A stretch of 64,000 nt of DNA from Geosiphon pyriformis uo1 (GCA_016748015.1 JAAOMT010000302.1:124001-188000), one strand, 5' to 3'; shown: positions 6,641-57,129, numbered from the stretch's first letter. The notes: a model not told the origin generated them from the sequence alone. Made by a program: numbers and translations.

Positions 6641-8129
6641 ACAGTGAAGCGTGTGTTATTTTGACTCATTGCATATAGGTTTGTCTTTGTTTTACCCTGG
6701 TTATCTCATAAACAGTTTACATTTTTACTTCGTTCATTGTAGATTTTGTTTTGATCAACCAATTGAATTTCCTTAAATTTGGAAAATTTAACTTGGAAAG
6801 GAAAAGTACGGAATAGACTTACTAGACGTTTTTATCAAATTTTGTGAAAAATGGTTTACTTTGTCAGCTAGAACAAGTATTGGTATAAGAAGCTAATAAC
6901 CATCAATTTATAAGAGTTTTTTATGAAAATGAAATATATACTTGTTGAATTTTTCGCAGCTGGTAAATAAACTAATTAAATGTAAACTGACATCTTTTAA
7001 ATGGTAAAACATTAAGAATTGTGAAATTTTCAATAATACAGTGTATGACAAAAAAATGACTACCACATTTCAACCAATGAATCAAATTAGATAAAAATTT
7101 ATCTAAAAAATTACATATTTACATTTAATAAGATATTAAAATGCTGTTTTCCATCATTTTTTTATTAATCATTCCAATTTTTTCTAATTTTTAGTAGTTT
7201 AAACAAATGATAATTTTAAACATACAATTCTGATTTGAACTTGTAAAATATTGTTTTTACAATATAAAAAGAAAAATGTTAAATTTTATGTTATAAAATA
7301 TGTTTAATTTATAAATAAAAATTATAAAAAATATATATATATATATACAAATTTAAAACTTGGAATTATAGCAAATTAAGTTAATTATAATAAAACTATA
7401 ATATTTTATTAAATTCATATTAAAGAAAAAAATAAAAAGATAAATAATAAATATTTGGTTAAATTTTAAAAAGATAATAACAAATTTTAAATATATTCAA
7501 AAAATTTATATAATGTAAAAAGCTTAGAATGTAAGTTTTATAAGATAATAATCGAAAATATTGGCCAAGATTAATTATATTACTTGACTAAAATTTAAAA
7601 AAATTAATATAATTAAAATTAGTAAACATTAAAAAGTTAAAAATAAAAATCATTTATTAAAAATTAATAAGTAATTTTAATTATTTTTGTTTTATCAATT
7701 GCAATTATGCTGTTTTTCAACCAATTAAGAAAAACATAATAATAATAATAATAATAATAATTAAATTAGGTAATTTTGTTTTAATTAAGAAATATTGCCT
7801 GTTTTTAATAATAAAAATGGTCATTTGAAAAATATTTAAATACTAAACTAATTTGAGAAAATAATTTAAAAATATTAATAAAAATCACATATTTTAATTT
7901 TACTTCGCTTAATAACAATTAAAATTACCTCAAGTAATGATTACATTAAAAACAATAATTAATAATATTCAAGTTTTTATTGTTGAGTAAATTAATAAAT
8001 TAAAATTACTTTCTTTTAGATACAATGTGTTCCATTTACTTCTATTATTTTGTACTTATGACATTCTTTTGCTTATATTTCTGCAATATTTTCTTCTTTT
8101 TTCACATATTTCCGCAACATAATTAATTG

Positions 8130-8415
8130 AAAATCATTCATTTGGGATGAGCCGAGACCAATCAAGCAGCTATTGTGGGAATTGAGAAAGAGGTGTTGGA
8201 TATGGTTGGTAAACGAATTTCGGACAGTTCATTATGTAAGTGTTGATTTTTCATTTAAAAGCATTTTTGGGCATTTCTCGTTTTATTTTGTTTTCATAGA
8301 CTCACTGGAATCTTGATGTTGATGCTGCTCAAAATGTAAGGAATATCTTATCCAGTGAACTCTGGTGGTGCCTACAATGGGATAATAAATAACCCAAAAT
8401 TTATGATAGGCTAGG
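8130..8415 (+). mobile_element. Fanzor1-family relic, copy A (C-terminus + 3' tail)
   Basis: RPIKQLLWELRKRCWIWLVNEFRT; 64-nt GTAAGT...CATAG intron at 8236-8299; THWNLDVDAAQNVRNI; tail ends GATAGGCTAGG. Confidence 0.8.
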
Positions 8416-8664
8416 ACCCCTAAATACATGTTGCTCATTATAAATGAATTTCTAAATTCAAAGGTCTCGAAGAAATATGTATATATTCTTAAAAAACATC
8501 TAATTTTAATTTCTTGTCATAAATAGGTGCTTTTCTAAAATAATTATATTGACTCGATTTTTGCACTAAAGGGAAATAAATCTAATCTATAAGATAAGTA
8601 TAATTGGTTTCCAAGGTAAACAAATTCCGGCTAAAAGTCTTCGATTCTGTTTAAAGAAAAATGA

Positions 8665-10291
8665 TTAAAAAACTGTCTGGAAGAAAAAAAAGAAAAATTC
8701 AGAAATTGGATACTGCCTTGAGTCAAATAAACTTGATAATTGATCATCAGCAGCCGATATTCCTTCTTCTAAAGCAGCCCGGTACCATCGAATCGCTGTG
8801 TGAACGTCTCGCGCGACACCATCCCCGTGTTCATAACAAATACCAACCATCACTTGACCAAACGGGTTTCCGGCTTCTGCGGATTTTTTATACCAAAAGA
8901 GGGCAGTCTTTAAATTTTCTTGAGTGCTTTTACCTTGATGATAGCATGTTCCCAAATGATACTGGCCTTGTGGGTCTGGATTGAATTGAATTGAAAATTT
9001 TTATTTAAAATCCAAGTGCCTTCTTTTAAAAATTATTAAGGTAAAATTCGAGCATTTCAAACAAACCTCCACTATTAGCAGATTTTCGATACCATTCAAA
9101 CCCTTTCTCTTCATCTACCTCAGTTCCCAGGCCTTTCTGATAGCACCAACCAATATTAAATTGAGCAGCTGAATTTCCATCATTTGCCAAGTTTTCAAAC
9201 CATTCAAAGGCTTTATTTAGATTCTTATCTGTGCCAACCCCATCTCGTATGCAAATACCAACGTTGCATTGTGCTATGTGGTTTCCAGCATTAGCCGATT
9301 TCTGATACCAATAAAAAGCAGCATCTTTATCCTCGCGAGTTCCAATACCATGTTGATAGCAAAATCCAAGTGTACACTGTGTTTCGACATCACCGCCCTC
9401 TGCTGAACGTTTATACCAATAGAAAGCTTTTTTCTCATCTTTCTCCGTAGCGATTCCTTTCTCAAAGAAATATCCAACTTTGAACTGAGCCACCAGATCA
9501 TTGCCTTCAGCTGATCTTTGATAATACTCGAATGCTTGATTGTCATCTTTTCGGGTTCCTATTCCATTTTCGAAACAGTTTGCGTAATTATAAAGTCCTG
9601 CCATGTTCCCATTTTCTGCTGAAGTTTTATACCAATGGAAGGCCCTTTCTTCGTTCCTCGGCACTCCAATTCCTTGTTTGAAACAGTAACCAAGAAAGTT
9701 TTGGCCAAATCTATTGCCTTCTTCTGCTGCTTTTTTATAGTATTTAAAAGCCATTTTTTCATTTAATGTTGTTCCAATTCCGTATTCGTGACATAGTCCC
9801 AGCAAGCATGGCGATTGTTTTCGTCGTTTCTCGCAGTTAAGGATGTTAAAAATCACTAAAGCATCTTGATTGCATTTTTTAATATGTTCTTTGAGTTCTG
9901 TCGACATTTTTTCAAAATATTCCCCTCGATTAAGTGCCGCGGAAAATACCTCAATTATTTGATCAACGACTGTGATGGCATCTATAACCTCAACACTTTC
10001 GTCGCTTGAAGATTGGCCAATTTCCTGACATTCAGCCAAGAAGCATTGCGATGACAACATTGAATCATCATTATTATCTTTCGAGGAGCCTTCAGAAGTC
10101 TGATCGAAAATATAACAATTCTGTGAAAGATTTCGCATCATATGTGCCAACTTATCTTCAGCTTTGAAATCATGCAGAGTGGATGGGGAAAGATCACAGA
10201 TATTTGATAGTTTTGTGTCCACATTTGTTAACCTTTGGAATGATTCAACCAAAGAAATAACTGTCTTATCACCGAAAGGATCGTTTGACAT
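8665..10291 (-). CDS. Sel1-repeat protein 1 (9 repeats, 2 exons)
   Basis: ATG at 10291. GT-AG intron 9066-8976 joins in frame (SANSG/DPQGQYHLG). Nine ~36-aa Sel1 repeats; last repeat RDVHTAIRWY. Confidence 0.9.
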
Positions 10292-13200
10292 ATCGTTTCG
10301 AAATACTGTTAAAAGTTTCAAGAGAGAAATTATTAATTATATTAAAGATAGAGACAATAAAAATTCTCGGAACTTTCCTGAAACTCGATAGGTCTGACTC
10401 AGGAGTGACCTGAATAGTATTTTTACTTTTTCATGTAAGGGATTAACTAAATGATTAACATTAATTCGACTTGAATCACGGATTGTGAGTAACGTTTTGA
10501 GCCGATCATTAGGTTCGACCTTTTTGTAATAATCGGGGTTTGGATTGCAAGGAATTTGATTCGTATAACATTGAACAATGAGCAGCATCTTTATATAACC
10601 AGAAACTAGAATAAAAACCGGAAAAAACAAGATGATAAAGTTAGTTTTAATAACAAAAATTTTAAAATGTTTATCGGGGATTTTCTCTGGTAAACAGAAT
10701 CAGGCTGAAAACAGTTTTCCATAATGAAAATATTTCTAAGCGATTGTGTTATCTGGAACCTCATGATTTTGCCAGGTATTTTATTGGCCAGTGCAAACCT
10801 TAATTTTCAAATCTTAATAGAACGAACAGGAATTATAAATGGCTTGGATTCTAGTGTGACAATCTTAAATGCATGTGTCAGGTATAGAATAACTCGGTCG
10901 CTCCTTAATTCGGCAAAGATTCAACCTTATTAGCTGGTTTATTGTTCCTTTTTAGACCTAAGAGCACTTCGGGGTCTTCTGATTGCAGGAGGCTTTTCAC
11001 TGGATGGCCTACTATTATAATTAAATCCTGGACAACAGCTTGAAGATCTGACCACATCTACAAATATTTTTTTAATCAAGTATTCTCAGTTTGGAAAAAC
11101 TAGTGTTAAAACATTTAATTTTTGCCACGCTTACTTAGATCTAGAACAATACTTTGAGCTTTTAAGAAAACCACATATTTTCCGCATCTTTTTTTACCGA
11201 ATGAGTTACCTTTTAGGGAAGAGTCGGTATTCTCTCAATCTGATAGTAAGGGTACATATTTTCTCGAGGAAGGGAATATCAGTACGTAATTCAGTAATGG
11301 AAATCACCAACTCTGTTGATTATATAAATAAGAAATTTCAATATTTCCATTTCAACCAAGTTGGTCTTTTAACTATAATTTTCTAGCTAGATAATGAGTT
11401 AAGTGTGAGCGCAATTTTTGCTCAGATTAAATAAATTTGCAAAAAAATTTCACGCCAAATGACTGATAACTAGTTGTGTAATGGCCCGAGAGTAGCTTTA
11501 ATTTTGGAAAATTCTCTTACTGAACGGTGGGATGAAACAGGTTAAAAAAATCTTGCAAAAGGAGCAATATCATCATACAAAGACGTACCAAAACGGTTTT
11601 TTGAAAGCTTTGGTAGTGAGAATGGGAATTTTCTGATCGAAAATCCCCATTCTAAGCTGGGTGGACCAGTACAATTATCAGAGTTGATTAAAGACGAAGA
11701 ACTTTGTGCCGATAAAAATCAAATAAAACTAAAGTGCACTGAAGACGATAAAGCTATATAAATTTGTTTACTTTCTTATTGTAAAAAGAAAATCGAAGGA
11801 ATTGGAGAAATTTTTCTTAAGTGTCGAGCTTGATATGCAAAGAACTTAGATAATCTGAGAGCGGGCATTACTTCAAAACCTTATGGAATTTTTTCTATAA
11901 AGAAACAACAGTTTTTTTTATGAAGCTCAAAGAGTTCAATTCTATATAGCAACATTTTTCAAAAAAATTTTTGTTCCCAGCTTAAGTGCTATTTTTGCAA
12001 ATTAAATATTTAACTGAAACAATTTACAACATTTGATTGGAGATTATTATAAATATCCTTATTAATAATTGATAAAATTTTAAAATTTTAATTTTTGCAT
12101 TTTACAGAAATGTTATTGTTAAAGATTTCTAAAACAAAAATATTTTAATAATACTTGTTTTAAATAATTTATTATGCTAAATTATAAACATAAGAAATTA
12201 TCTAATGGTAAAAATTGATTTTTAATTAAATGTATATTTATGTATTTTATTAAAATATATATTCATTCTTTCTAGTCAATTATAATGAATTTCAGAATAT
12301 TTAATTTTTCTGAATTTCTAATATATATTTTTTTATATTGTTTTTAATAATATTATATCTTTATTATTAAACAACTAGTTGATAATTTTAGACATTTTTT
12401 TTTTGAAAAGCCTAAGTATTATGAACAGTCTGCTTTAAATTATTGTTTTGTTAAAACTGCTATTTATTTTTGAATATCTGTTTATTATCAAAAATATTTT
12501 TTCAAAGTATTTTATACAGAATTGCGCATTCATAATTTGTTAAAAGTAAATTTATTTTACTTTATCTACAGAATTTGTTCTAAATAAAGATTTTGATAAG
12601 ATTTTTTAATAATTTTGATTATAATAATCTAATTGAAATAGAGAATTTTTACCATATGTATTGCTTAAATTTAATAAAGCTTAGCATTGACTTTTTCATT
12701 CGAAGCCAATATTTCGGGTACTAATTTATCTGAAAAAAAAAGAAAAGTCAACAAACACGACCTTTATTAAATTTAGCTTCAAACCTCAGTTTTGGTTTGC
12801 ATTTTGAATAATATAATTTGAATAAGTTATACAAATTTTTATTTCAACTTAAAATTTTCCTTTACGGAGTGAATACACATAGGTTCGATAAAAAGAACAA
12901 TTTTCACCCTTTGTACCATAATTTACAACAAATAGTATTTTGGGTCATTATGCAAAAAATTTGCAAAAGACTCGAATATGACCAAATTGTCATATTGAGG
13001 CCCTCCAAGTTAATATATAAACATTTAAATATAATATTTGCAATAATGAATTTTGAAAAATGAAAAAGAAATCAATAAATAATTATTTTGCTTTCTTTCA
13101 AGCTAAGGCACATAAAAAATCAAAACGCGCGCAACCATTTTTATAAGAGTAATTGTCATACATTTTTCATTAAATTTATCCCCTTACACAAACCTTCTAT

Positions 13201-13424
13201 TTTAAAGTAATCATCTCTTGACAAAGTAATCAGTTTTAAAGTATCTAGAATGTAATTGACCAGTAGTAATTATGGTAGTTGAATCGAATTCAGATCAGAA
13301 GGATTTGTTTGTTGCAGTAAAAGGAAAAGAAAAATGTAATTCATTGTTCAACAAAAGAATGGTATTTCCAAAATGGATTTATCAGAGTAAGGAAGTCTGG
13401 ATTAAGCATGTTAACCATTCTGTA

Positions 13425-14076
13425 TAGTAAATATTTCGACTTTTTGATTTATTATATCTTTTTATTAAGTTATTTTAATGTTCATCTATTGGTATCTATA
13501 AACATTATCTTGAATTCTTCAACATATGCACATTCTTCTAGGATTTCATGTCACAAGACATTGGCATCGTATACAATAGAAATCATATATCAACTGTCAA
13601 AAGGCATATAATATTATATGTAAAAAGATAATGAAGAAAATTAGCAGGAAAATGGTGGCCATTTAGGCATGGGGAGTTTTCAAACACTTAAGTTTATGCA
13701 CCGAGACCAATTAAGCAGCTATTCCGAGAATTAAGAGAGTTAAAGTACTCCAGCGATCTTTGGTCAGTTCAATTATGTAAGTAAATGTGTCTGGTAAGTG
13801 TTCGCTTTCATTCAAAACCTTTTTTGGGAGTTTTTCATTTTGTGTCTCATTTTATTTTGTTTTCATGGACTCACTGGTAGTGTGATGTAAATGCTGCTCG
13901 AAAATCTAAGGTTTATGAACTCTGCTGCACATTCAATTATGAGAGAAATAACAATGGATTAATGCATAACCCGTTAGTTTAATTATTTATAAGACGGGAT
14001 GTAGCCTCCATTAGAGGATCTGAGGTTTGCAGTGCCGCGATTCTATAGGATTAGTTCCATATGGATGATTAGCTCG
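13425..14076 (+). mobile_element. Fanzor1-family relic, copy B (longest + strand copy)
   Basis: HMHILLGFHVTRHWHRIQ*KSYINCQKAY; APRPIKQLFREL; DLWSVQLCK*MCL; intron from 13794 with acceptor mutated to GG; THW*CDVNAAR; tail TATAAGACGGGATGTAGCCTCC...GATTAGCTCG. Confidence 0.8.
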
Positions 14077-14115
14077 ACTCGGAGTGAGGGGAAAGTGATG
14101 ATTCCAAAAGATCGA

Positions 14116-28313: not shown

Positions 28314-29036
28314 ATGGCGAGAACGATGATCATCATCCCAAATTCAGAAATGGATTTACTTACCAACAGTTCTCGCTTGGAATCACTAACAAAGCTCGCA
28401 ATCGAATTTTCCTCCATAAAAGTTCCCGGTGATGATGACGAATACCTTCGAGCATGCATTAACAAATGGTGTAACTCCCACAAAATTGATGCAGAAACTC
28501 TCTTTGACCTATTATCCATTTCATCAAATGAGAACTTCAAATATTCATGCTTACTTGGATTCGCTTATGAATATGGTATTGGAACCGAGCCTGATCAAAA
28601 CGCTGCTTTCGAATATTATCTACAAGCTGCAAAAAATGGTGATAGTTTAGGACAAAATCAAGTGGGCTCGTATTATGACCGAAATTACTATTTGGATATG
28701 ATGATTGAATCTGAAAGTGATGTTCATGAACAAGCGTTCGAATGGTATCAGAAATCAGCAATGGGAGGGAATGCTAATGGTCAATACAATCTTGCAAATT
28801 GTTATCGTAAAGGGACTGGAACTTATAATGATATGCGCAAGGCATTTTTCTGGTATTATGAAGCTGCCAAAGCTGGCGATGTGACTTCACAACGCACTGT
28901 TGGGTTGTGTTTTGAAGCAGGACATGGGACAATGACAGATGTTCATCAGGCTATTTTGTGGTACCGACAATCTATTGTAGCGGGGGATGAAATTTCTGTC
29001 GATTTTTGTCGAAGTCTTTTTCAGAAGGCAGAATGA
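28314..29036 (+). CDS. Sel1-repeat protein 5 (4 repeats)
   Basis: 240-aa ORF; repeat 2 carries an insertion (RNYYLDMMIESESD); last repeat TDVHQAILWY. Confidence 0.88.
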   Translation: MARTMIIIPNSEMDLLTNSSRLESLTKLAIEFSSIKVPGDDDEYLRACINKWCNSHKIDAETLFDLLSISSNENFKYSCLLGFAYEYGIGTEPDQNAAFEYYLQAAKNGDSLGQNQVGSYYDRNYYLDMMIESESDVHEQAFEWYQKSAMGGNANGQYNLANCYRKGTGTYNDMRKAFFWYYEAAKAGDVTSQRTVGLCFEAGHGTMTDVHQAILWYRQSIVAGDEISVDFCRSLFQKAE

Positions 29037-30179
29037 AAAATGACCTTGATACCAAAAGTGAGATAGGCGAACCTATTAGAAAAAAGAATTAAGATAGAGC
29101 TCTAAGCATTTTCAGTCTCTGCTTTTCACAAATTTCAGAAATTATTTAAATCAAGAAATTAATCCATTTTTCAAATTTTTTATCTTTGAATTATGGATTT
29201 CTTTACTGTCTGATCACAATATTCCTGTTCAATATAATTAAGTACTTAGTTTTTATTTTACTTAAAACATTTCCAGATTTTTTTTATATTTTTTAAATTC
29301 ATAGGATTTTTATACCATTAACAATTCTAATAATTTTTCGTCAAATAATATGGTTTTAATTGATAAGATGACATCAATTTCAAGTTTAATAATTGAAATT
29401 TGAGTAATGAATTTAATAATTTATATGAAAAAAAGTAAAAAAGAAGTTTTAATCTCCAATAAACAACTATTTTATTACAATTATATATATTATCTAAATT
29501 TTTTTAAAATTGTGTTAAATTATTTAAAAATATATTGTTTGTTTATATTTTTTGATTCTTTAAATATTGTAATATTTTTAAAACAAAGTTTTTTTTTAAA
29601 TTATTAATATTATTAAGTTGAACAAAATTGATAGCTTTTTAAAATAAAATACATTTAAAAATTAATATTTTTTATAATTAATATATGTTATATCAACCTA
29701 ATAAAACATATTAAATTAATAATAATAAATAAAAACTTGTGTTTAAACATACTATTATAATTCAAAATAATAAAATAATCAAAATTAACTTGAAAAATTC
29801 AAAAATAAAGATAATAAATTTTACAATAAAATAAATAACTTAGTTAACAATCAGATCAAAAATAAAATAACAATTAAATTTTATAATCAAGTTAATAACT
29901 ATTTCTAAAAATAAAGTAGCTCCTTAATAAAATATAATGAATTAATAATTATTTTAAAAAAATAATATTACCAAAAAACTTTTTAATCTTAAAATATAAG
30001 AATAGATTATAATTATTAACAAGAAATTATGCTAAATAACATGATAAAACTACATTATAGATAAATAATAATATTTATTAAAATAAATGCAATTATTTCA
30101 AACCTTGCTTGTTTCAAATTTAAGCTTAAGAAAATTTTTTAAAGTACTTTTATTTCCACTTTAGTGTACACATACATAC

Positions 30180-30720
30180 AGTTTTTATATCCAATCAATA
30201 TGCAGTCGTTGGCCGTTGAGGTTTGACAATAATCGGAACACAATCTTGAAAGATATCTTGATTCAACGAGAAAAATTGGCAAAGGCCTTTTTTGTAGGGT
30301 ATTTGCCCCCGACCGCTTCCAATACGTCTTTTTCCTCTATTCTGCAAAGTTTGTTCTTTTTGATGGTGCAACCTTCGAAGAGCATGAACTTTCCCATGTT
30401 ATTCTTGCCATCAACACTATATACATGTCTATGCACATCGATTTTTATATATAATAAGGATAAAATGGCCTTACCCACACAGGATTACATCTTACGGAAA
30501 AAATTACATATTATCGGAAACCGACGAATGAACACGAAGACAAGTTCGCAAAACCTAAGCGGATAGTTCCCATCCATGCAGTCTTCATTGATCCATTAAA
30601 AGAATAATTTAAAATATTAAGTGTCTTTAAAATCGGGGTATATTGCATAGCCAGATTTCGCAATTTAAAAGTCATTTGCAGAAAATCCTGAAAATATAGC
30701 TTGTCTGAACTTCTTAGCTA
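30180..30720 (+). mobile_element. Fanzor2/IS607-TnpB relic, same family as the 54-kb element
   Basis: KFAKPKRIVPIHAVFIDP (RuvC-I). Nucleotide block GCAAAACCTAAGC...TCCATGCAGTCTTCATTGATCC is shared with 54008-54055 on the opposite strand. Confidence 0.72.
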
Positions 30721-31087
30721 AATATAGTTAGAATTCAGTAATAACTTCAAATGTTGAAGCTCTTTAGATCTATCATTTTAAAAACACCATTTAAAGACTG
30801 GCAGTAATTGTGATGATTGAAAATTTTGTAATAATCCGCCGAACTAGCTTTTAGTAGCTTGGGAATTTCAGTTTAGATCTGATCATTAATGTGTCAAATG
30901 AAATCTCATTTTTTCCAACCCCAGGAAAATCGTAAAGCAAAATTATACCCACTGTAATTGGATGTAGAACTGTGCATTTAAAAAAGCAATAAATAGGATC
31001 AGCACCTTAAGCCCTTATTCAAATAACCATTTTGCACTACAATTGTTATATATATAAGATACAGATCCTATCCATTGAAACTACAAA

Positions 31088-32305
31088 ATGGACGAAGCTC
31101 GTGACGGAATTTCAAATATTAAACTGAAATGTGATGCTGCAAAGCCCAATAAGATTGAAAGCAAATTGATCCTGATTAAGAACGAGAGTATGACTCCGGA
31201 AGCCAAACAAATATATTTTGGATGCTTAGATAATTTCATAAAAAGGTTGCAATTCGACATCTGCCAAATAATCCGACTGAATTTTATCACCCAGCATGGA
31301 CAATGCATCGCAGAATATTTCAAACAGATGCAATTGGACCCTGTCGTTGTTTTGGAATTACTTTTCAGGCCGAAATATAAATCCCAATATCCGGGATTGA
31401 TAGGGGTTTTTTATGAATATGGATTAGGCGTACCAGTTGATGTGCAAACAGCGGTGAAATATTATAAGCTTACTCAAGAAAACGATGATACTTTTTTCCA
31501 AGTATCTTTGGCAAATTGTCTTTTTGATGGAAAAGGAGTTCCAATCAACCAAAGACTTGCGATTGAACTATATAGAAAGGCTGCTGAAAGTGGTGAAAGT
31601 CGGGGACAAAACAATATTGCATATTGTTATCTGTTTGGAATAGGAGGTCCCAAAGATGAAAAAATGGCATTTCACTGGCAAGAAAAAGCTGCGAACCAAG
31701 GAAATGCGTATGCACAAAGTATATTGGGATGTTTTTATAGTGATGGCACGGGCGTTGAGAAAAATCAAGAGATTGCGTTTGAATGGTTTAAAAAATCAGC
31801 AGATAATAAATGTTCCAATGGACTATTTCACTGTGGACAAGCCTATCTTCTTGGAGAAGGCACCGAACAGGATGAAAGAAAGGCCTTTGAATGTTACAAG
31901 AATTCGGGACAATTGGGTCACCAGGACGGAAAATACTTTCTCGGCTATTGCTATGAACACGGAGTGGGGACACAGATTGATTCAGCGAAGGCTTTTTCTT
32001 GCTATCATCAAATTGCTCAGAATGGTGAGGCTCAGGGACAATATTCACTTGCCAAATTCTATTTGGTTGGTTTAAGCGTGAAGCAAGATCTCAGAATTGG
32101 ATTTTATTGGTCTATGAAGTCTGCAATTGGCGGTTACTCTCTAGGACAAATGAGAGTCGCTCTTTGCTATCGACATGGGTGGGGAATCCAAAGGGATATT
32201 CACAAAGCGTTGCGATGGTGTCGAAAAGCTGAAATAGATGGGAATGAATTAGCTATTCGCGATATCACGAATATTTTCAATTTGGATGGAGATGATCAGC
32301 TTTGA
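31088..32305 (+). CDS. Sel1-repeat protein 6 (8 repeats)
   Basis: 405-aa intronless ORF; last repeat RDIHKALRWC. Confidence 0.9.
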   Translation: MDEARDGISNIKLKCDAAKPNKIESKLILIKNESMTPEAKQIYFGCLDNFIKRLQFDICQIIRLNFITQHGQCIAEYFKQMQLDPVVVLELLFRPKYKSQYPGLIGVFYEYGLGVPVDVQTAVKYYKLTQENDDTFFQVSLANCLFDGKGVPINQRLAIELYRKAAESGESRGQNNIAYCYLFGIGGPKDEKMAFHWQEKAANQGNAYAQSILGCFYSDGTGVEKNQEIAFEWFKKSADNKCSNGLFHCGQAYLLGEGTEQDERKAFECYKNSGQLGHQDGKYFLGYCYEHGVGTQIDSAKAFSCYHQIAQNGEAQGQYSLAKFYLVGLSVKQDLRIGFYWSMKSAIGGYSLGQMRVALCYRHGWGIQRDIHKALRWCRKAEIDGNELAIRDITNIFNLDGDDQL

Positions 32306-32871
32306 TTGGTAAGCGATGTTTAATTGATATATTTGTGGTAATACTTTCTTAAAATAACTCTGAAATTTTAGCTTGGCTCTTTAGATATTTCTTTACATAC
32401 TGATCTCTAAGGTTTTATAATCAAATCTAACACTATCTCAACCCTTAAAGTAGAAACTCGCACCCTTCCCCGTTTTCTCCTCTAATCTGGACGAAACGAA
32501 GGACCAAACACTCGTATCTTTTTGAGGTCTTCATTGTCATTTTGAATATTAATAAATTTATATTGGGCTAGATTATTGATGTGAAATTATTATACTTTTG
32601 AAATTAATTGTCAACCAAATTTTGAATACTTAAATGCCAATTTTGGGTTCATAGGCCAATTAAGTATTCTTGTGGATTGAAAAAATGAGACTACGCATGA
32701 GTTTGGAGAATTCGGCTTAATACGTTAATTAAAATTGACCTGATTTTTAATGTTTCGGTGCAATTGAAAATTATTAGCAGTAGAATTTAATTTATCCTGC
32801 AAGGTTTTAAGAATAAATTCGTGATAGAATATTTTTTGAATTTAAAATTCTTAGAAATTAGGATAAAGAAA

Positions 32872-33858
32872 TTAAAGAGGTCTAGCACGAAATAATTTAA
32901 AAAGTGTTGATCGTTGTATTCCGTTGCAATCATACGGAATTTGAAGCCACTTCAACGCTTCATGATTATCCTTGAAGATCCCCTCACCCGCCATTAATTT
33001 TTTGGCGAGCAAAATTTGACTAATTCCACTTCCAAATTCTGCGGATTTTTTTAACCAATAAATTCCCTTGATTTTATCCGGAGAGTCCCCCTTCAAAAAT
33101 TTGCGCGCTACTCGTCTCATCGCGTACGAATAACCCCAATCAGCCGACTTCTGGAACCATTCATCCGCCAGCTTTAAATTTTTTGGAGTTCCAAAGCGAA
33201 TACCAAGCTTATAACAATAGGCAACCCTATATGCAGCACGAGGGAGGTGATTTTCAGCAGCCTTTAAATGCCACTGAAAAGCGATCTCATCGTTTCTCGC
33301 AATTCCAAATCCATGATGATAACAGAGACCTAGTTCATGTTGTGCTTTTGGGTCACCGGCTTTTGCGGCTTTCTGTAACCATAAAATAGCGAGCTGCGGT
33401 TCTCTAGTGGTGTTAACACCAGTTTTGTAACAAGTACCTAAGAAAGTTTGAGCAAAAACATGACCTGCATTGGCAGCTTTCTCAAGGTAGAAGAAAGATT
33501 GTGCATAATCACTTTTGACACCAAAATCATTTTGGTAGAAAATTCCAAGACGACTTTGAGCAATAGATGAGCCTAAATCTGCTGCTTTTTTGGTTTGTAA
33601 AAGCGCGTTTTTTTCATCGATAGTGCACCCAATCCCATAGGTCAAAAGAAAACCCAAGAAGTTTAAGGTCTCTGGTTCTTCATTTTGGTGATGAGTGAAG
33701 TCGTCAAAAAAGTCACGAAATTTTATTTCATTCTGAATCAGATGCTTTTTTATCGCATTAGCAATATCTTGTTCTTCATAGAAATGGTTGTGCAATTCAT
33801 AAAATATTTTATGAGGGGTAGTAGATTCATGTAAAATTTCAAAACTGGTTTCTTGCAT
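32872..33858 (-). CDS. Sel1-repeat protein 7 (7 repeats)
   Basis: First ATG at 33858 (the ORF track uses TTG at 33882); last repeat KDNHEALKWL. Confidence 0.87.
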   Translation of the reverse strand: MQETSFEILHESTTPHKIFYELHNHFYEEQDIANAIKKHLIQNEIKFRDFFDDFTHHQNEEPETLNFLGFLLTYGIGCTIDEKNALLQTKKAADLGSSIAQSRLGIFYQNDFGVKSDYAQSFFYLEKAANAGHVFAQTFLGTCYKTGVNTTREPQLAILWLQKAAKAGDPKAQHELGLCYHHGFGIARNDEIAFQWHLKAAENHLPRAAYRVAYCYKLGIRFGTPKNLKLADEWFQKSADWGYSYAMRRVARKFLKGDSPDKIKGIYWLKKSAEFGSGISQILLAKKLMAGEGIFKDNHEALKWLQIPYDCNGIQRSTLFKLFRARPL

Positions 33859-34139
33859 TGGTTTGATCAGATCCGTTTGCAAAAATGAGTTCTAATTTGT
33901 GCTTGAGCAAAACGTGTCAATATTCTTTGTTTGCCTATTTATTATATACATATTTTGATTGTTGCAGTGAAATTTGAACTAGTAAAAATCAAGGCTTCGG
34001 GAAACCCCTTTTTCATGTGTATTACTGTACCCAAAATGCCATCATGCTGCTGAGGGCCGAATTCGTTATTATTCTCTAAACAGTCACTAACGGATGGATT
34101 GTCATATATCAATAATAGGCAAGGCTAAGCATTGTCACT

Positions 34140-34581
34140 ATTTCCAAGAAAAAATTCCCCGAGCGCCCATTTTCATCTCTATCTATTACAGTCGTACAAT
34201 TTCGGCATTTACATATCGCAGATCCTCAGATGTTTTGGATGTTTCCACACCAACTAGTCTTGGAAGTTTAAGCTTCATTTTGGATAATAACATGAACTCC
34301 TAATTCCTCATTAAACGTTGGCGAAATTGACAATATGCCTAGCCAAGCATTTTCGGACCGTTTTTCGTGTAATTTTTCTTGACCATATTAGATACCTCGA
34401 ACGGCGGAATGATGATAGCGTCGAATTCATGAGTAAAAAAAGCAACAGTCTTTTTGTGAATCTCATTTTGCAAATGTTTAATTTTTTGTTGAATACATGC
34501 TATTGCTTTAAAAGTTAATTGTATTAACTTGTCTTTTTGTGATATTAATTGCCCATGTAAATGCAAATATAAGCAATACAT
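34140..34581 (-). mobile_element. Fanzor2/IS607-TnpB C-terminal pseudogene
   Basis: KIKHLQNEIHKKTVAFFTHEFDAIIIPPFEVSNM; KMLG*AYCQFRQRL; EELGVHVIIQNEA*TSKT (RuvC-II); WCG...CRNC (Zn finger); IDRDENG/ARGIFL (RuvC-III). Confidence 0.88.
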
Positions 34582-36197
34582 TCAATATTTTATAAACCCA
34601 GACAAACTTCTATTCATTAGTTTTTTGAAAATAAGTAGGTTTGTTATTAGATATAATCTTGTATAAAAAGAGCCATTGTGCTTTGTTTTAAATGAAAAGG
34701 TCATAATGAACATTATTATTATTATTTGAACTGGAAATAGGCTTGTACTAATATGTATATTTATATATTAATAAAGTTTAAAAATAAGAAACATAAAAGT
34801 AAATTCAACACAAATTGTAATAGTTTAATGTAATTTTTTAAGAAAATGAAAGAAAAAATAATATATTGATATATTTTGTTGTTATTGTGTATTATGTTTA
34901 ATAATTTTATTTTGTGCAGACAATGCTTAACAAATACTAAAAAACAGAAAACATTTTTAATCACACATTATTAATTAAGATATATCAAAAAAAATTGTTA
35001 TAAAAAATGTTAAATCATAAGAAAACAAAATAATATTATTGAAAAAAGTTGATTAAAGCCTATATGAGATAAACAAAAGTTGTGTAGAACTATTAAGGTT
35101 GTTTATGTCTAGTACCTGCTAGTATTGCAAATAAAGCAATTGATCATGAACTGTTGTCATTTTTTTGTATTTTTTGGTTTTTATGCTTTTATTTGTATTT
35201 TGTTTTTCATTATTTTTGCATTTTTATTGTTGATAGCAAGAATAGTCTTGACCAGCTCATGTTTATTATAGGTTGGTTTGTTGAAAAAAACCATAAATTT
35301 TGTAAAATATAAAAAAAAGACATAATGAGCAACCATAATTTTTGAGACTATTTTGCAACTTATTCATTCCAATAAGGTTTTAAAGAGCTGTTTTTGTTGT
35401 TTAAACTTCTCTTTTTGCTTAATGATGGTAGTGGTAATGGTAGTAGTAGTGAGATTAACATTTTTAAAAACTAGCTTGGAAAAAAAAGTAAAGAGTTACT
35501 TTTTTAATCAAAACAGTAATTGAAAAGAGGATGGTTCTAAAAAATGATGATAAAAACAGTGACAATAATAAAGACAGTAACAGTAGTTCTACTATGAATA
35601 TTCTCAAGACAAATCCTCTTTCAAGTGCATCTTCTATCTTCAATAATAATATTAATGAGTTGAAGCGAGAGCTTCTCAATTTTTTCTTATAGATATTTGA
35701 TCATTAATTGAAAGCGGTTTTACTCCAGTAATTAAAGAGGAAGTCGAAAAAAAGACCAATTATTAAGAAACCGAAATAATACCTCTTTCCACACATGGAA
35801 AAAAGTTCTTTTGCCCTTCATCTAATGCTTATTGCCAATCAAAAGAATATTTTTGACAAATACGATGATGAAAAAACATAAGAGGTTCAACAATAATTAA
35901 ATTTTCCTTTCAATTTCCCCTAATGGAAAGCACACTTGGAAAATAGAAACATTTGAGACAACTCAATTTTTTCAATTTAATACTCATTATCTTTTAAAGA
36001 CTGTCAACTTGGATTACCAAGAAATCTTTATTCCTAAATGTTTGTATTTTTGCAAGACTAATTTTTCACTTAATAAACCTAAAAGGTTGAATTTTTCTTG
36101 AATTTGAAGTTTGAATGGTAAATTTAAATTTGAAAATAATCATTTGTCGGAGCCATTTTGTCAACGTTTCCATTAATATTGTGGTTGTCGTTGTTGC

Positions 36198-36246
<49 letters not shown>

Positions 36247-36299
36247 TGAAGTTATAACATTATTTGTGGGCTAAATGCGAGGATAACTAAGAAATTAAG

Positions 36300-38249
36300 T
36301 GGTCCAATCTCAAAATACCACCTTCACATCAAGGGTTATTCATGTTTACTCAACTAGAAAATCAAATGCATTAATAAATTTTTAAACATTAGCCTTTAAT
36401 TCAAATGCCTCTCTCGCCTTCACTTCGGATCCTGGATCCATTTCACACTAAGGATCAAAACATATAACTTATAAGCAAAATCTGATAACCTTTCAATGGA
36501 GTTTTTGGATTAGAGAATAATTTACCTGGGATTTGGGTGCTGATGCTCTGACAAGGAAACGGAAACGATACTTCCAATAATTATTAGTCCGGAATGTATT
36601 TTCCACCCAGCAAGGTATTATTTCAGTATGGACAAGATGTGAGAGTGAAAATCCATTACTAACTAAAATTCAAGGGAAATTGATTAAAGGGAATTCAAAA
36701 ATGCAGAAATTAAAATATTTTCATTGAATACCATAGTAGTGTCAGTTATTGTAATACGGAGCGGGGCAGGATGAAGGTCTCCGTAAGGATTTGGGGGAAT
36801 CAATTGAAAAGGATCAGAAGAAGTGTACTCATTGTCGTATAATTTATTATTCAGAATAATTTAGGAAAATTTTGAGCTGATCAAATAAAAAAAGGATAAT
36901 TTCCAATAATTAACCCGACATGCTTCTTGATTTCATGGCTCTGAATTCGCAGGAGTAATCAAGTGAATAACAGTTGGAATTCGTGTTATATTGTAATAAG
37001 AATTTTAAAGTAAACCTGGGGCCATGGGAGTCAGCATTATAAAGATCTTTCTCATTTACTCTTGACAAATGACAAAAGAATAAATAAAGGAGAAAGAAAC
37101 GTCTTTCGTATGTCTATCAAATATTTCTTGAAATTGCGCTAAAATACCATCTCTCCAAGTCATTACGAACTCGTCTGCGTCTTGTTCTATTTACATTCTA
37201 AAAAAATTCGCAGAAGACTCAATGAGTTGTTCAACTAACCTCTTCTGGGCCCAGTCATCGTCAAAATTAGCCTTTTCAATTATGGATATTTCCAAATGTA
37301 TAAAATCCATCCACGGTTTCTTCATACTTTCATCTTTGATATGGTCATCTTGTTTTAGGAGGAATTGAAACTTCCCTAAAATTAATTGTCCCAATTACTT
37401 CTAAGTAGATATGAACCCGACCATATCACCACGATTCTAATTCAGAAAAGGATATTCTGAATAAATCGTGGTAAAAAGGTAATTCAAAATTTTCATTTTA
37501 AAACCTGTCCGAGTACTTGTCGTGGTAACATAATTTGGTTTCCCTTCTATCCAGGCATTGAGTATGTAATTCCGAATTTTCATATAAGGCTCAGGAGTTT
37601 TGGCAGCTAAGAATTCAGAATTAGCTTCTTTTTCTTCCTCGGTGATTATTAATTGAACTAAAATCTTGCACAAAAGGTTGCTCGAAATATGAATACTCTG
37701 TACCGTGGAAAATTCGAAAAAATTTTTTCTACCTTTTCTGAGGCCGAAACTGAAGCTTCCTATTATTCTCAAAATTAGCTATTAAAATTTTGAGAATAGG
37801 GTTATTATGTCAATAGTAGCTTTTTTAAGCCTCACATTCTTCACCGGTGAAATCATTATCGTCTCAAGTGACCCATCATCTGCAGATAATATTCAAAAAC
37901 AATTTGATAGAAGAAATGCTAGGAAGGCGCAATAAATATGAATTTATTTACCATCTTCGCCCAATTCTGTTAGGTCAGACACATCATCCAGATAATCTTT
38001 GTCATTCTCCATTTCACCACTTCAGCGAATTTCAAAAATTTCAGGTTTCTGTTCGATGACAACTCGCGGTATAACCAAATGCTTCAGCTCTTCATTTAAT
38101 TCGAATCTCTTTGCGATCTGAGCATTATTAATTTCTTTTTCATTGATACCAAGTCTCGGGGAACGCAAAATTTCATGACTTTCCAATTCTAGCTTATCAA
38201 TTCTAACTTCTTGAGTTATTGATAAATATGGAGATTTTGCCATTTCCAT
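36300..38249 (-). pseudogene. MYSM1: MYSM1-like (SWIRM + MPN/JAMM deubiquitinase) pseudogene
   Basis: [29 protein letters not shown]; GRVHIYLEVIGTINF; DPFQLIP; VMDFHSHL; CEMDPGSE. TGA at 38022-38024, a deletion at GD(VNCI)GR and no intact WYHSHP. Confidence 0.75.
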
Positions 38250-38349
38250 TTTTTTTTTGTTTTTGCAAATTGTATTTCTCTATCATCAGAGGAAAATTAA
38301 ATTTCTAGTAGAATAAAATTATAGTGTAATCGAATTTAGGGAGATTCGG

Positions 38350-38390
38350 TTATTAATTGTACCCGACACCTCTCTCACAATTCCCGGCAA
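38350..38390 (-). mobile_element. Fanzor1-family fragment, copy G
   Basis: CCGGGAATTGTGAGAGAGGTGTCGGGTACAA, nearly identical to copy C at ~19573-19603. Confidence 0.65.
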
Positions 38391-38523
38391 GCCCCAAAGG
38401 GTTGGTATACATGTGAAAAAAATCAGTGACTACCATAAATAGAATTTATGAGGTTTTTTGCTTAAACGTTCTATGAAATAATTAGGTAGCCCTAAATCTC
38501 GAGAACATGACCATTTTATGGTA

Positions 38524-39936
38524 TCAAGCAGACCTTGATAATTGGCAGAAAAGAATTTTGAGTTTTGGGTCTGCAGCTTTGTTTCCAGCTGCTGAGGCTT
38601 TGTGATAGCATTTGATGGCTTCGTGCAAATCACGTAATATCCCTTTTCCCACGGAATAAGAATCTGCCAAATACAGACTGCCTTGACTATGACCGTTCCA
38701 TGTTGATCTCAAGTACCAATAAGCTGCCTTTCTGTCGTCTTTTTTGTTCTGTTCTGCTGTGGAAAAACTATAGCCTAAGTAGTTCAAAAGAGGCCTGGAT
38801 CAAAATTTCATCTTGAAATAAAATTAACCTAAACAAGAATAAATTAAATACCATAGGAACACTGTCCCGAGCCATTTCCTCCTAATGCAGATTTTGTGTA
38901 CCATTCAAAAGCTTTTCTAGCATCCTTATCACATGCAATGCCATGTCGATAAAAATACCCTGAATTGGGAAATTTTGTCAATTAAATCTGTAAATTATAA
39001 TTAAAAAACATAGAAATCGAAATATGTGCCTATATTGTTCTGGCCTTGAGAGTTTCCCGCTTCAGCAGACTTTGTATACCAATAAAATGCTTTCGTTTTA
39101 TCTTTCTTTGTACCAATCCCTCTGTCATAGCAAAAGCCCTTCAAATTTTATGAACGTATTTAAGAATTGAGATTTTGAAATTAGATTAAAATATATAAAA
39201 TATTCGACATAAATAACAGATTGAAAAGAAAATGCTCATACAAGATTACACTGTCCATCACTATCACCTCCCATAGCAGATTTCCCATACCAAAGAAACG
39301 ATTTAGCTTCATCTTTTTCAACCCCAATTCCGTTTCGATAAGCGTATCCCAGCTTAAACTGAGCTACTAAATCACCTCCAAATGCCGATTTCTCATACCA
39401 ATAGAAAGATTTAGGCCTATCTTTCGGACACCCAATACCTTTTTCGTAGCAATATCCAAGATTATATTGGCCTGTTGTATGCCCATTCTGAGCAGATTGG
39501 GAGTACCAATAAAAAGCCGAATCAGAATTTTTTCTCACGCCAATTCCATCTCTGTAACAATATGCCAAAAAGTTCTGTCCATATTTGCAATTTTTTTCAG
39601 CCGCTTTTTTGAAATACTCGTATGCCGTTTCACTGTTAAATTCAGTGCCAATACCAAATTCATGACAGAAGCCAAGAAGACAGATAAACAAGGTTTCCCT
39701 TTGGGGATGCAAAGTATTTAGTTCAACATGATTTTCTTTCTCAGTTAAATTAACTTCGGCTAAAAGTGAGCTGAAAAAATCGGTAGTAGGGCAATTCAAC
39801 TCTGCGAGATTGGAGTTGAGTTCTGTAACCATTTTTTCAAAGTATTCTCCGCGCATTATCGCATTGTGAAATATTTGTAATTCTTGTTCAACTATTGAAT
39901 CATTCTTTGGACAAACTGATGATAATGATGATGATG

Positions 39937-39971
<35 letters not shown>

Positions 39972-40303
39972 ACATCTTCATCTGAAACTTCGATATTGGC
40001 AATTTGTTTTAGGGCTGGTAAAATGGGTAACTCCCCTAAACTTGGATGAGCAAAATCACAATCTGGTTCCAAGAATAGCTTATATTCAAAAATTTTTACA
40101 TGTAAACGAATTTTTGCTTCAAAGAATTGTGGGATATAAGTTGAATTAATCAAAACTTTTCATACCTTCTGGTGTGATAGCGGATGAACTTCCTTATTAA
40201 ACTGCAGGGTTTCAACAATAGGTGATTTTTGCCCGTTTACATCCATATCACTGTCAATATGACGAGCCCTTTTCTTCGTTAAAGTATGTTTTATAGTTGA
40301 CAT
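38524..40303 (-). CDS. Sel1-repeat protein 8 (8 repeats, 5 exons, poly-Ser tract)
   Basis: Exons 40303-40166, 40078-39242, 39138-39030, 38959-38852 and 38774-38524 join in frame (one GC-AG intron required); last repeat RDLHEAIKCY. Confidence 0.82.
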
Positions 40304-43600: not shown

Positions 43601-45898
43601 TTAATTCAGATTTCGTAAATATGAAATTTAAGAGGTTGCTTGAAAAAAAATTTGCTAAAGTATAATTCTATAAATCTTTTTTATTTTCAAGTATTTTTTC
43701 AGAAAAAGCGTGAATTTTAACCATTTATACAAATTTCTAGTTCGAATCAAAAAAAAAAAAAAATGTATATTTTGATATTGGAGCTGGTGAATAAAAAATA
43801 AAACGGATAAGGCTTGGATATGATTATCGGTCCTATATATATGACTTTGATCGTGAAAAAAAAACTTTTTCAAGGTGTGCTCAGAATTTTTTATAAACAT
43901 TGACGAAACATTTTTTTTGGAAAGTGATTGTCTAAATTCAAACTTTTATCTTTAATAATTTTTAAAAAAGTTATTTATATCAAATTAGAAAGTTGGTGGT
44001 GAATCAATGGGCTCAAAAATAAATTTCATTTCTATAGATTAACAACGTTGGTTAAATATATTTTAAGATGTATTTTTTTCTGTAAAAAACCGTTTTTGAA
44101 TGTTTAAATAACTAAAAATGTTGAATTGCCAAAAGATATAATGTATAAATCGTAGTTATTAATTAAACGTTTCAACATTCGATCAAAATTCGACACTCTT
44201 AGGAACTGTTGCGAGATTTTATTAAATTAATTTAATTATATTTACTTTTTTCATTTTATCCTTTATAAGTATCTTTGGAACATATTTGGTACTTTTATAA
44301 TAGAAAACTGAGTTTATCTTTAATAAAAGTGAGAGCTTTAAATTTATTTAAGTAGATTATTCCTTTCAAGATGAAATTTCAATAAGTTTTTGATTTCATT
44401 GAGGCTGTAGAGATTTTATCAGTATAAATGTAGTTTACTATTCGAAATAAAAAATATTCAATTTTCTTGAAAGATCTAAGGTTTACACAATTTGAAATTG
44501 GAAAGATCTTAGAGAATAAAGCTTTTTTTTTTAAAAAAAAAAAAAAAAAAGAAGAGATTTAAAAGTTAAAAATTATCAAATATTTTTATAGGAAAATACA
44601 AATTAAAACATTGACTATACAAAGATGAATTTTTGTAAAAAAAAAAAAAATTATTTTAAAGCTAGGTTTTAATTCACTTGCGTACTTGAAGATAAAACCT
44701 TTACTTTTTCGAAACCAATTAAATGTAAACACTATCTTTGTCAGAAAGTCATTATTTTAGAATTAAACTTAACTTCTCTAAATTTTAATCATATAAAAAA
44801 AAGGAAAAAATACATAGAAAATAATAGTAATAGAAAATTTTTTTATATGGGTGATTGAACTTTCTCAAAAAATTCCAATGAAAGTATTTGTTATTAATAA
44901 TACTCAGGTAAATCTTTGATCAATAATTATTTTCCTGATACACGTAAAACAATAAAATGAAAATCTATTTACTTATTTATATTTTAAAAAGCCGAAGGAT
45001 TCCGTCAATAGGAATTATTTTCATCCATGAATATGTTTACAAGTTTTTCAAAGACTGTTTTACAAACCAAAATACAGATAAAAAATATAGCCTCTAATAA
45101 ATCAGATAGGAAACAAAATTATTTATATTTGAAACAAAAAAGTTATTGCGTTTCTTGTAATACCAGTTAGAATAAACGTTTTTAATATAATTAAGTTACC
45201 TTAGTCTGTCAGTTTTAATATTGACCTTTGATTTGTTGATAAATGCACAATATATATTTGTTTCAAATTCATATTGAAATACCTGCACATCCTAAAAAAA
45301 AATTTTCCTCCAGATAACTGATATAGGCTTACAAAAGAGTCATGATTTATATTTTTTAATTTTTGTCAAAATCTAAAATATATATTGCGTTTAGAGTTAG
45401 TAGTTTCTATGATGGTTTTGCAAATTAAAACTGAAACGTAATCAAATCATTTTTCAACATTGAACAAGTAAAGACATGTAGAACGAAATTTTTAGGCTTT
45501 TATTTCAAATTTCATTTGGTATTGAATCTCTGAAAAAAAAATTTTTTTTTTCAGATATCAAAAGATTTTCAGTATTTTGAAAAACTTCTGACAAACGTTA
45601 AAGGCTTAAGCTATATGCATCATTTCATCATTTTACTCTCTCCGACACTAGAATCTTGTTTTGAATTTTATCATAGGCGTTAAAATTGTATTAATTTTCA
45701 CACGATCCATTCTAGGATTAAAAAAGTTTGGGACAAATTCTTTTCATTTCTCATAAACTTTGAAGATTAAAAATAGAAAAGATCGTAAAGAGAAAAAAAG
45801 AATTTCTGATATCTATTTCCAAGATGAAACACTTTCTTGCATTGACATATATTATTGAAACCTACATGAATACAGTTAATTATCCACGTTGAGGTAAC

Positions 45899-46440
45899 CC
45901 TAGCCAATCGTATTTAGTCGCGGCGCTCTCTTATACTAAGGGGCTATTCTATAACTTCTCTCCCCAAATTGTATAAGCACCTGCCCACCAGCAGAGTTCA
46001 TAGAAAAGAAGATATTCCTTATATTTCGAGCATCATTTATATCACAATTCTAATGAGTTTTTGAAAATCAAAGAAAAGGAAATACAAAATGAGAAATTCC
46101 CCAAAAGGTTTTCAATAGAAAACAAACACTTTCCAGACATGTATTTGGACTGACCACCCATCACATAATGAACAAATATTGCTTGTCTGAAATTTCTCTA
46201 CTAACCGTACCCAACACCTCTTTCTCAATTCCATTCCCAAGTGGTCACCATTATCTTTTTATAAAAGTAATATTGTATCCCTTTACATAGTTAATAATCA
46301 ATTTCCTTCCCATGCGAAATCAATGTCTTGTGCCATGAAATCTTAGAAGAGTATGCATATGGTGAAGATAATGTTCATAAGCAGCATATCTGTTAAAATA
46401 AATTAATATATTTACTTTGAAAAATGATTCCAGCTTGAGA
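45899..46440 (-). mobile_element. Fanzor1-family relic, copy E
   Basis: HHMHTLLRFHGTRH; ELRKRCWVRLVEKFQTSNICSLCDG; intron remnant; NCDINDARNIRNIFFSMNSAGGQV; tail ends GATTGGCTAGG. Confidence 0.82.
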
Positions 46441-46909
46441 ATATCATTATTTTGTTAAGCAATGAATCACATTTTTCTTATCTTTGTCATTTACCGCCAC
46501 AAAAAAATTCTTCCAAATCTTTATGAATGTTCAAGGGATGGAAATTACTCTTTTCATCAAATTCATACATTGTTGAGATTTGTAAAATTCATAAATAAAC
46601 AATGGTGGGATGATTTTAATACTTTCTATGAAAATGGTTCCATTTTATCAATCAACAAAAAAATAATAATCTGTAAATTCTTTATTTGTTAAAATTTAAT
46701 TAATTGAAAATATTTCACTGAGAGAATTTCTGTAATCAATTTTATGTTTCAAAATTCTTTTATTAAATTTGATAAGATACTATCTTCTTGAATCAAAACT
46801 TATTAAATTGATCCATGATTCAGCATTTTCAATTTTTTTTCGGGAAAATTAATTTTTCTCTTGTATACCAGATTGCTATCATTTCAAAAATTTCTCGAGG
46901 AAAAATAAT

Positions 46910-47125
46910 AAGAGGTCTCGAATATGGTTTGTGGTTTAAAGGACGTCAGGGATTTTGGTCAGTTTTGTAAATGTTTCTCATTTCATAGACACACACTGAA
47001 ATCATGATGTAAATGCTGCTCGAAATATAAAAATATCTTCTTGTCTATGAACTCTACTGGTGCCCCATAAGACGGATTTTATCCTCCGCTCGGGGGATGT
47101 GAAGTTTACAGTCCGGTGATTGGCT
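46910..47125 (+). mobile_element. Fanzor1-family relic, copy F
   Basis: TTTCATAG acceptor; H*NHDVNAARNIK; TATGAACTCTACTGGTG; CATAAGACGG...CCTCC...GGGGATGTGAAGTTTACAGT...GATTGGCT. Confidence 0.78.
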
Positions 47126-57089: not shown

Positions 57090-57129
57090 CCTCATATGCA
57101 TTAATCAGTAGTTGATAAGATCAGTCTCT

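Follow-up and report, generated by a model that had tools for sequence, protein, structure and literature searches.

The stretch analysed here (the window) comprises 64,000 nucleotides from Geosiphon pyriformis uo1 (GCA_016748015.1, JAAOMT010000302.1:124001-188000) and corresponds to positions 124001-188000 of contig C687 in the genome searched, which amounts to 128.3 Mb in 792 contigs; C687 beyond the window was covered via these searches and individual loci taken from them. Host genes occupy this region, among them at least eight of the Sel1-repeat type and one SWIRM gene, and it holds relics of a gene family for Fanzor1, an RNA-guided nuclease (Table 1). An earlier note on this DNA had described seven mutually homologous segments (copies A to G), and all seven lie where it placed them, on the strands it assigned, and match one another (self-BLASTN, E 1e-6 to 1e-21). 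Using nhmmer with a seed that contained B, C and F, copies A, B, C, D, F and G score 52-540 bits, and pairs among them are 60-76% identical; copy E is a fragment of about 50 nt, 31 bp of which match C at 97% (self-BLASTN). The positions were thus correct and all seven belong to one family, but their extents were incomplete, as B starts at 13275 and includes RuvC-I, F reaches 46570 and C begins at about 18476. Also overlooked were RuvC-I itself, an intron shared with Gigaspora rosea (intron 1), the 5' half of C, which is eroded, and a further copy, H, the eighth relic and a more divergent one, at 5186-6100. Taken together, the copies are very probably what is left of an old, dead Fanzor1 gene family with two introns, every copy of which is broken.

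Kinship with Fanzor1 and intron positions

Natural stop-free pieces of the copies were aligned to build a profile, and this matches 48 proteins among 1.84 billion (best E 2e-17), with Funneliformis geosporum, Gigaspora rosea, Entrophospora and Phlyctochytrium among the sources. Nine of the ten relatives tested match PF07282, eight of them above its cut-off, and the full-length relatives share DPG, a glutamate six residues before CxxC, a second cysteine pair (CxxxC) and WNRD; DPG, E-x6-CxxC, a second cysteine pair and WNRD are the Fanzor signature (PMC10711439, PMC3627910). When a profile of the relatives was compared to known structures, SpuFz1 was the best match (E 1.4e-25), followed by GtFz1 (7e-21) and PpFz1 (8e-19), with the next hit at 5e-9. 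The Fanzor1 identity proposed in the earlier note is upheld by this route, and the ranking of three Fanzor1 structures ahead of all others indicates, indirectly through the relatives, Fanzor1 rather than Fanzor2 or TnpB. Mapped back onto the window, the relatives' profile finds its pieces in the correct order. For the large REC region of Fanzor1, N-terminal pieces were found in order in C (best 10.2 bits, shuffled maximum 7.6). Pfam and PDB searches with the short relic pieces returned nothing useful, and hits to caspase-9 were rejected as chance matches to a 26-residue stretch.

The RuvC-I motif is intact in none of copies A to G (full-length relatives have DPG, and G. rosea and locus L080 have DSG), though alignment to G. 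rosea locates it in B, where N replaces D, and in F, where it is frameshifted; H keeps D-P. The RuvC-II glutamate is retained in A, E, L003 and L047, and its six-residue spacing to the first CxxC is readable in F (E to K) and in the relatives. A TS-x-x-C4 zinc finger is present family-wide, with the first cysteine pair in F and the second in C and L003, and both are in frame in no copy. The R-D motif of RuvC-III, which in Fanzors follows the finger by 5-50 residues, is also present, the majority of the last exon reading THWNRDVNAARN, and its aspartate is retained in A, B, D, F, G, L009 and L047. No copy has the three catalytic residues in one open frame.

The intron that the earlier note placed directly before RuvC-III (intron 2) is genuine, as intronless relatives read straight through (codons are contiguous across the site in L053, L064, L077, L080 and L085) and G. 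rosea and three metagenomic Fanzor1 genes have an intron at the identical site. In A and C it is 64 nt long, GT..AG, in phase 0, and lies between the C-L and T-H-W-N codons; in B and F it is 75 nt long. The GT end is retained in 10 of 14 copies and the AG end in 7 of 14. Its GT..AG ends, the frame restored on removal and its absence from intronless homologues are what a spliceosomal intron would be expected to display, and five further database proteins terminate in the read-through predicted for it. Intron 1 follows the helix after RuvC-I in G. rosea and four metagenomic genes. Its GT donor is found at the aligned position in B, F and H; because the acceptor is clear only in H, intron 1 is no more than probable for copies A to G. 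Two intron sites are thus kept between Geosiphon, Gigaspora and metagenomic relatives, while another subfamily uses a different site, and conserved sites of this kind are usable markers of descent. The gene of F. geosporum has an intron after RuvC-II instead of at the intron 2 site. Two Geosiphon relics of another subfamily, L053 (C778:645 kb) and L064 (C776:274 kb), have no intron 2, and L064 apparently has one directly behind RuvC-II instead, at the position used in Funneliformis. Intron gain in Fanzors has been published (PMC10530073); the literature searched yielded no paper on the conservation of intron positions in Fanzor1. As they are split by introns, such Fanzor1 genes are missed by Fanzor surveys based on open reading frames (ORFs).

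Among known systems, SpuFz1 (Spu-1) of Spizellomyces punctatus (PMC10432273; PDB 8GKH) is alike in its WED-RuvC-I-REC2-RuvC-II-zinc finger-RuvC-III order, in being multi-copy in a fungus and in having a conserved non-coding region after the stop codon. It differs in consisting of a single ORF with 30-nt terminal inverted repeats (TIRs), 19 full-length genes and 134 ghosts (PMC10432273), whereas the Geosiphon family has two introns, no TIR that could be found, no intact gene and no homogeneous ghosts. Ghost loci as defined for SpuFz1 are TIR-bounded and carry an omegaRNA and no Fanzor ORF (PMC10432273), and the Geosiphon copies are not of this kind: they retain broken coding sequence, carry differing deletions, are 60-78% identical and have no TIRs.

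An unannotated relic in G. rosea (GCA_003550325.1, RIB27796.1) is near full length with few lesions, has both introns at the same sites and shares 63-69% DNA identity with B, though it is closer to copy H and L074 (70% over 495 nt). This locus (L086:4380-6500, QKWP01000087.1) has been mis-modelled as two short genes, contains a few stops and frameshifts and lies beside a retrotransposon gag-like relic. Fanzor1 fragments also occur in F. geosporum and Entrophospora. Fanzor1 in fungi and introns in Fanzor genes have been published (PMC10432273, PMC10530073); what is added here is a Fanzor1 lineage in Glomeromycotina (Geosiphon, Gigaspora, Funneliformis and Entrophospora), and no paper naming Fanzor together with Glomeromycota was found in the literature searched.

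Fanzor2 of the IS607 type shares the RuvC-II, zinc finger, RuvC-III architecture and occurs in the same window, but is a separate family with other motifs. A genome search with PF07282 gave 68 matches, none on copies A to G; most of the 20 examined are broken relics of the Fanzor2/IS607 type, in which at least two subfamilies are represented.

Upstream flanks and the local cluster

Nine of the approximately 15 family copies lie within 87 kb of C687, a distribution far from uniform (binomial 1e-22; the queries were drawn from the C687 region, and copies outside it are as close to the queries as to each other). Upstream of A, C, D and a further copy on this contig, L006, is a second repeat in the same orientation, which in the whole genome occurs essentially only on C687 and upstream of the copy on C490. 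In its 5' part, this repeat consists of the 3' portion of a gene of the Hsp70 family (HSPA12-like), and the Hsp70 relics are 72-84% identical to a gene that is apparently intact and immediately precedes L006 (C687:85.4-87.3 kb), with paralogues of that gene at 61-63%. On C490, the Hsp70 relic passes into Fanzor sequence within about 100 bp, and the copy is split by a 4-kb insertion with a DDE_3 relic. As the relics are nearest to a single Hsp70 gene that is itself next to L006, copies A and D, the copy on C490 and a unit at 57.6 kb in the window that has lost its Fanzor core were copied together with that flank. In copy C, the common part is a non-coding flank of 0.4 kb, and the copy is collinear with L006 (spacer score 209, shuffled maximum 196); C was probably re-copied in the same way, though this flank may be the element's own left end. 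Of the seven copies, at least two (A and D) are not independent but go back to a single source locus, whose upstream flank was copied along with them. No Hsp70 relic was found at B, E, F, G or L002, and a downstream flank is common to none of 28 copy pairs.

The course of events would have started with one Fanzor copy about 0.3-0.7 kb behind the HSPA12-like gene (C687:85 kb), after which the 3' part of Hsp70 and the Fanzor would have been re-copied at least four times, giving the units upstream of A and D, at 57.6 kb and on C490. This re-copying accounts for part of the cluster, and such co-copying with a host Hsp70 fragment means that local relic counts overstate transposition.

Copies look truncated at the 5' end, and a part of this is erosion, since the 5' halves are eroded rather than absent. 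Their GC content is 12-17% (18450-19300, 7000-8140 and C687:84130-84700), compared with 29% in G. rosea, and most 3' halves are at 31-36%. The AT-rich stretch upstream of C and L006 was considered as a host spacer and rejected, as eroded Fanzor N-terminal sequence lies within it. The corresponding stretch before the core of A (7000-8139) is probably the 5' half of that copy; it has only short upstream matches to C and D, which are not significant against shuffles.

The reading that competes best, which we regard as possible though doubtful, accepts the same family identity and differs in the mechanism of copying: transposition would be anchored at the 3' end (one-ended, as in Helitron2) and would carry upstream host DNA along, so that the cluster reflects local hopping with 5' transduction. 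It draws on the pattern of shared upstream and unshared downstream flanks, on homology between copies that ends in the non-coding tail or at its end, on the failure to find TIRs and on the occurrence of one Hsp70 plus Fanzor copy on a different contig, and it has a precedent in the Fanzor1 elements CRe-1, CRe-2 and CRe-3 of Chlamydomonas (CrFNuc, on Helitron2; PMC3627910, PMC10530073), which carry upstream sequence. These are likewise multi-exon and non-autonomous, with variable 5' extent, internal deletions and a retained 3' end, but no Helitron ends or target-site duplications are shown by the Geosiphon copies, which are far older and all broken. Neither Helitron transposase nor terminal hairpin nor target-site duplication was seen, the 3' bias is partly the erosion just described and not truncation, and old AT-rich downstream flanks may be merely unrecognisable. 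In addition, Hsp70 relics are found beside Fanzor2 relics too, laid out in the same way, at 30.1-30.3 and 55.4-57.6 kb, indicating local duplication of a general kind. Given the absence of any Helitron feature and these Hsp70 relics beside Fanzor2 relics, host segmental duplication is somewhat likelier as the copying mechanism; we give it an even chance, with 3'-anchored mobilisation and 5' capture a less favoured but serious candidate and any other mechanism rather improbable. The full version of the 3'-anchored proposal, a two-intron fungal Fanzor1 that lacked terminal repeats, moved from its 3' (omegaRNA) end, transduced upstream host DNA and seeded Hsp70 pseudogene fragments, appears unlikely. 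If true, it would mean Fanzor-element-driven duplication of host genes in an arbuscular-mycorrhizal lineage, both locally and onto another contig; unless transduction holds, the relics bring no new mechanism, and they include no working enzyme.

Decay of the family and its non-coding tail

A high-copy family with an intact master elsewhere, as the earlier note envisaged, is not supported. Searches of the whole genome by DNA, pattern and profile found about 15 copies in 128 Mb as a lower bound, nine on C687 (83.8 kb, 106.5 kb and A to G) and six elsewhere (C490, C571, C622, C657, C709 and C714); more distant Fanzor1 relics are also present. In searches of the whole genome, the full-length profile recovered ten fragments and the N-terminal exon of G. 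rosea five, all broken or partial and none an intact gene, and the hits at C709:398 kb and on C661 contain stops. That such a family exists, with every copy an independent insertion, is very unlikely: seven contigs and a star-shaped tree fit independent insertion for B, F, G, L002 and the copies on C657, C571, C714 and C622, but the Hsp70 flank is common to A, D and the C490 copy, and there are only about 15 copies, no open full-length match and no young copies. What does stand is a once-mobile, spliced lineage that ORF-based annotation does not see, as no copy has an open frame.

The copies diverge from the majority base by 14-27%. By part, divergence is 0.164 and 0.148 in the exons, 0.163 in the intron and 0.189 in the tail, and the tree of the copies is a star with no starred branch; a clade of the C687 copies is neither demonstrated nor excluded by it. 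Exons, intron and tail having diverged alike in a star tree, the sequences point to neutral decay after one period of spread. Pooled divergence at codon positions 1, 2 and 3 is about 0.17, 0.12 and 0.18. A CpA bias like that of repeat-induced point mutation was not seen (C>T at CpA 0.13, at CpG 0.20).

The ancestor would have been an RNA-guided DNA endonuclease of about 650 aa, with WED, REC, a split RuvC (D-E-D) and a C4 zinc finger, encoded in at least three exons, followed by a non-coding tail of 150-190 nt that by analogy would combine the omegaRNA scaffold and the right end of the element. It would have spread to about 15 recognisable sites in the Geosiphon genome over a short period and then been released from selection, with 14-27% decay, deletions and later Tc1-like insertions. 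Past nuclease activity of this ancestor is presumed, as are a host transposase acting in trans and the order of events; RNA-guided cleavage of DNA dependent on a target-adjacent motif could concern only the ancestor or the relatives, as no copy has an open frame. Mobility is deduced from dispersion, given that no TIR (by search), target-site duplication or transposase of their own was found for the copies. Fanzor1 is known to be carried by transposons of the Mariner, Helitron, IS4, Sola and MuDR types. The DDE_3 relic inside the C490 copy and the probable Tc1-like relic that cuts D on the opposite strand are later insertions, and Tc1 as host transposon is not demonstrated. The sole hint of a mariner-type host comes from L052 (C622), where a Tc1-like transposase remnant was seen by eye; it has the same orientation as copy L047 and precedes it by about 450-650 nt.

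Several points weigh against a wholly dead, neutrally decaying family. Besides the missing TIRs, target-site duplications and transposase, the genome searches score first-look candidates only and some runs missed known copies in the window, so that the counts are minimum values and a master with several exons could escape, or could sit in an assembly gap. Divergence is slightly lower at codon position 2, which permits some selection among masters. Finally, folding and covariation analysis of the tails, singly, aligned, as a majority sequence and across species, gave no signal.

The tail is common to most copies and stands where SpuFz1 has its omegaRNA, which makes it, by position only, a candidate omegaRNA. 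No consensus structure was found in it (z-scores -1.1 to +1.9), Rfam gave no match, and comparison with the tails of other species was not significant (E 14-18). Since the tail pattern, searched genome-wide, matches only three copies, all known and old, there is no young ghost family. It is highly unlikely that selection has retained the 3' parts, be it as guide-RNA (ghost) loci or as domesticated non-coding RNAs; the presence of the tail in most copies and the higher GC content of the 3' halves would fit, but tail divergence equals or exceeds that of the intron, deletions in the tail vary among copies, neither structure nor Rfam family is detectable, no nuclease of the family is left as a user, and RNA over the tail of B is antisense only. 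The RNA data come from one small public run, tested over 9600-15400 only, with contigs that show presence only. There, the spliced contigs come from the gene next to B on the minus strand (one with a CT..AC joint at 14158-14268), and the sole RNA on any copy tested is its antisense overlap of B's tail from 13957; neither RNA on the coding part or intron of B nor sense RNA was detected. Copies left by an integrated giant virus are scarcely credible, for although a 95-kb contig that carries D5 primase and AEP genes also encodes a full-length relative without introns, the spliceosomal introns are shared with other fungi, and the neighbours are Sel1-repeat, SWIRM and Hsp70 host genes with no viral genes seen beside the copies. 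That relative, L077 (ENA ERZ27272766, contig of 95.6 kb), is an intact intronless Fanzor1 of 687 aa, and its surroundings, with D5 primase, AEP and SNF2 genes, resemble those of a gene in a giant virus.

Feature coordinates and neighbouring genes

Table 1. Fanzor1 relics, shared flanks and neighbouring features in the window
Feature	Position	Strand	Remarks
Copy H, eighth Fanzor1 relic	5186..6100	+	Sister subfamily, 77% to C663 relic; WED piece; RuvC-I with D retained 5468-5500; intron 1 5640-5709; intron 2 shortened, 6021-6048; RuvC-III remnant
HSPA12-like Hsp70 pseudogene (3' part)	6119..6886	+	Directly upstream of A; 72-82% to gene at C687:85.4-87.3 kb
AT-eroded stretch, 15% GC	7000..8139	+	Between Hsp70 relic and core of A
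Copy A core	8140..8415	+	RuvC-II with E retained 8206-8226; zinc finger deleted; intron 2 8236-8299 (GT..AG); RuvC-III with D retained, frameshifted
Sel1-repeat gene array	9026..40153	both	At least 8 genes, without kinase domains
Copy B	13275..14082	+	RuvC-I 13275-13319, D to N; intron 1 donor 13427; stops in REC2/bridge-helix region; RuvC-II E deleted; intron 2 13794-13868, acceptor mutated; RuvC-III; non-coding tail ~13940-14082
3' end of spliced transcript of neighbouring gene	13957..14158	-	Antisense over tail of B
ORF of ~11-residue repeats	17481..17855	-	Weak FNIP match (E 1e-4)
5' flank common with source locus C687:85167-84752	18007..18392	+	Element left end or 3' flank of Hsp70 gene
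Copy C, longest	18476..19890	+	Eroded N-terminal pieces 18476-18571, 18638-18691, 19297-19326; internal deletions; second cysteine pair; intron 2 19687-19750 (GT..AG); RuvC-III partly deleted; part of tail
Copy D	23045..23245	-	RuvC-III exon with 3' part of intron 2 before it and part of tail; cut within intron 2 by Tc1-like relic
Putative Tc1/mariner transposase remnant	23243..23400	+	FQEDNAP motif by eye; no Pfam hit; opposite strand to D
Hsp70 relic and shared 5' flank, upstream of D	23647..24279	-	Includes gap 23743-23762 and 265-bp artefactual duplicate
Copy E	38339..38390	-	RuvC-II fragment
Copy F	45866..46570	-	WED end; RuvC-I frameshifted (46519); intron 1 donor 46415; RuvC-II E to K; first cysteine pair; intron 2 46133-46059, both splice sites mutated; RuvC-III with D retained; tail
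Copy G	46905..47130	+	Intron 2 mostly deleted; RuvC-III exon; part of tail; back to back with F
Hsp70 relic and shared 5' flank	57572..58815	+	No recognisable Fanzor core behind

At the gap within the flank of D, the flanking 265-bp arms are 98.9% alike (self-BLASTN) and the duplicate is an assembly overlap artefact; because the recognisable part of D ends at 23245, this gap is crossed by no claimed segment. A 2109-bp perfect repeat surrounds the second gap, 55648-55667, and is an artefact like that at the first. It accounts for the two arms of an IS607/Fanzor2-type relic at 53539-55647 and 55668-57776 on the minus strand, which are 100% identical across the gap; helix-turn-helix-like and DPG motifs are at 54439-54489 and 53980-54024. 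Two further Fanzor2 relics were found at 30090-30600 and 34166-34580, and the first adjoins an Hsp70 relic in the arrangement seen at 55.4-57.6 kb, suggesting an inverted local duplication.

An association of the family with Sel1 genes was rejected, as no Sel1 motif occurs within 1.5 kb of the copies that lie outside the window. The neighbour of B, at 14116-15086 on the minus strand, is a spliced, transcribed gene with three CT..AC joints, and its 3' end overlaps the tail of B. Within it, a plus-strand GT..AG joint at 14934-15013 (one contig, depth 2) may represent an overlapping transcript from the opposite strand.

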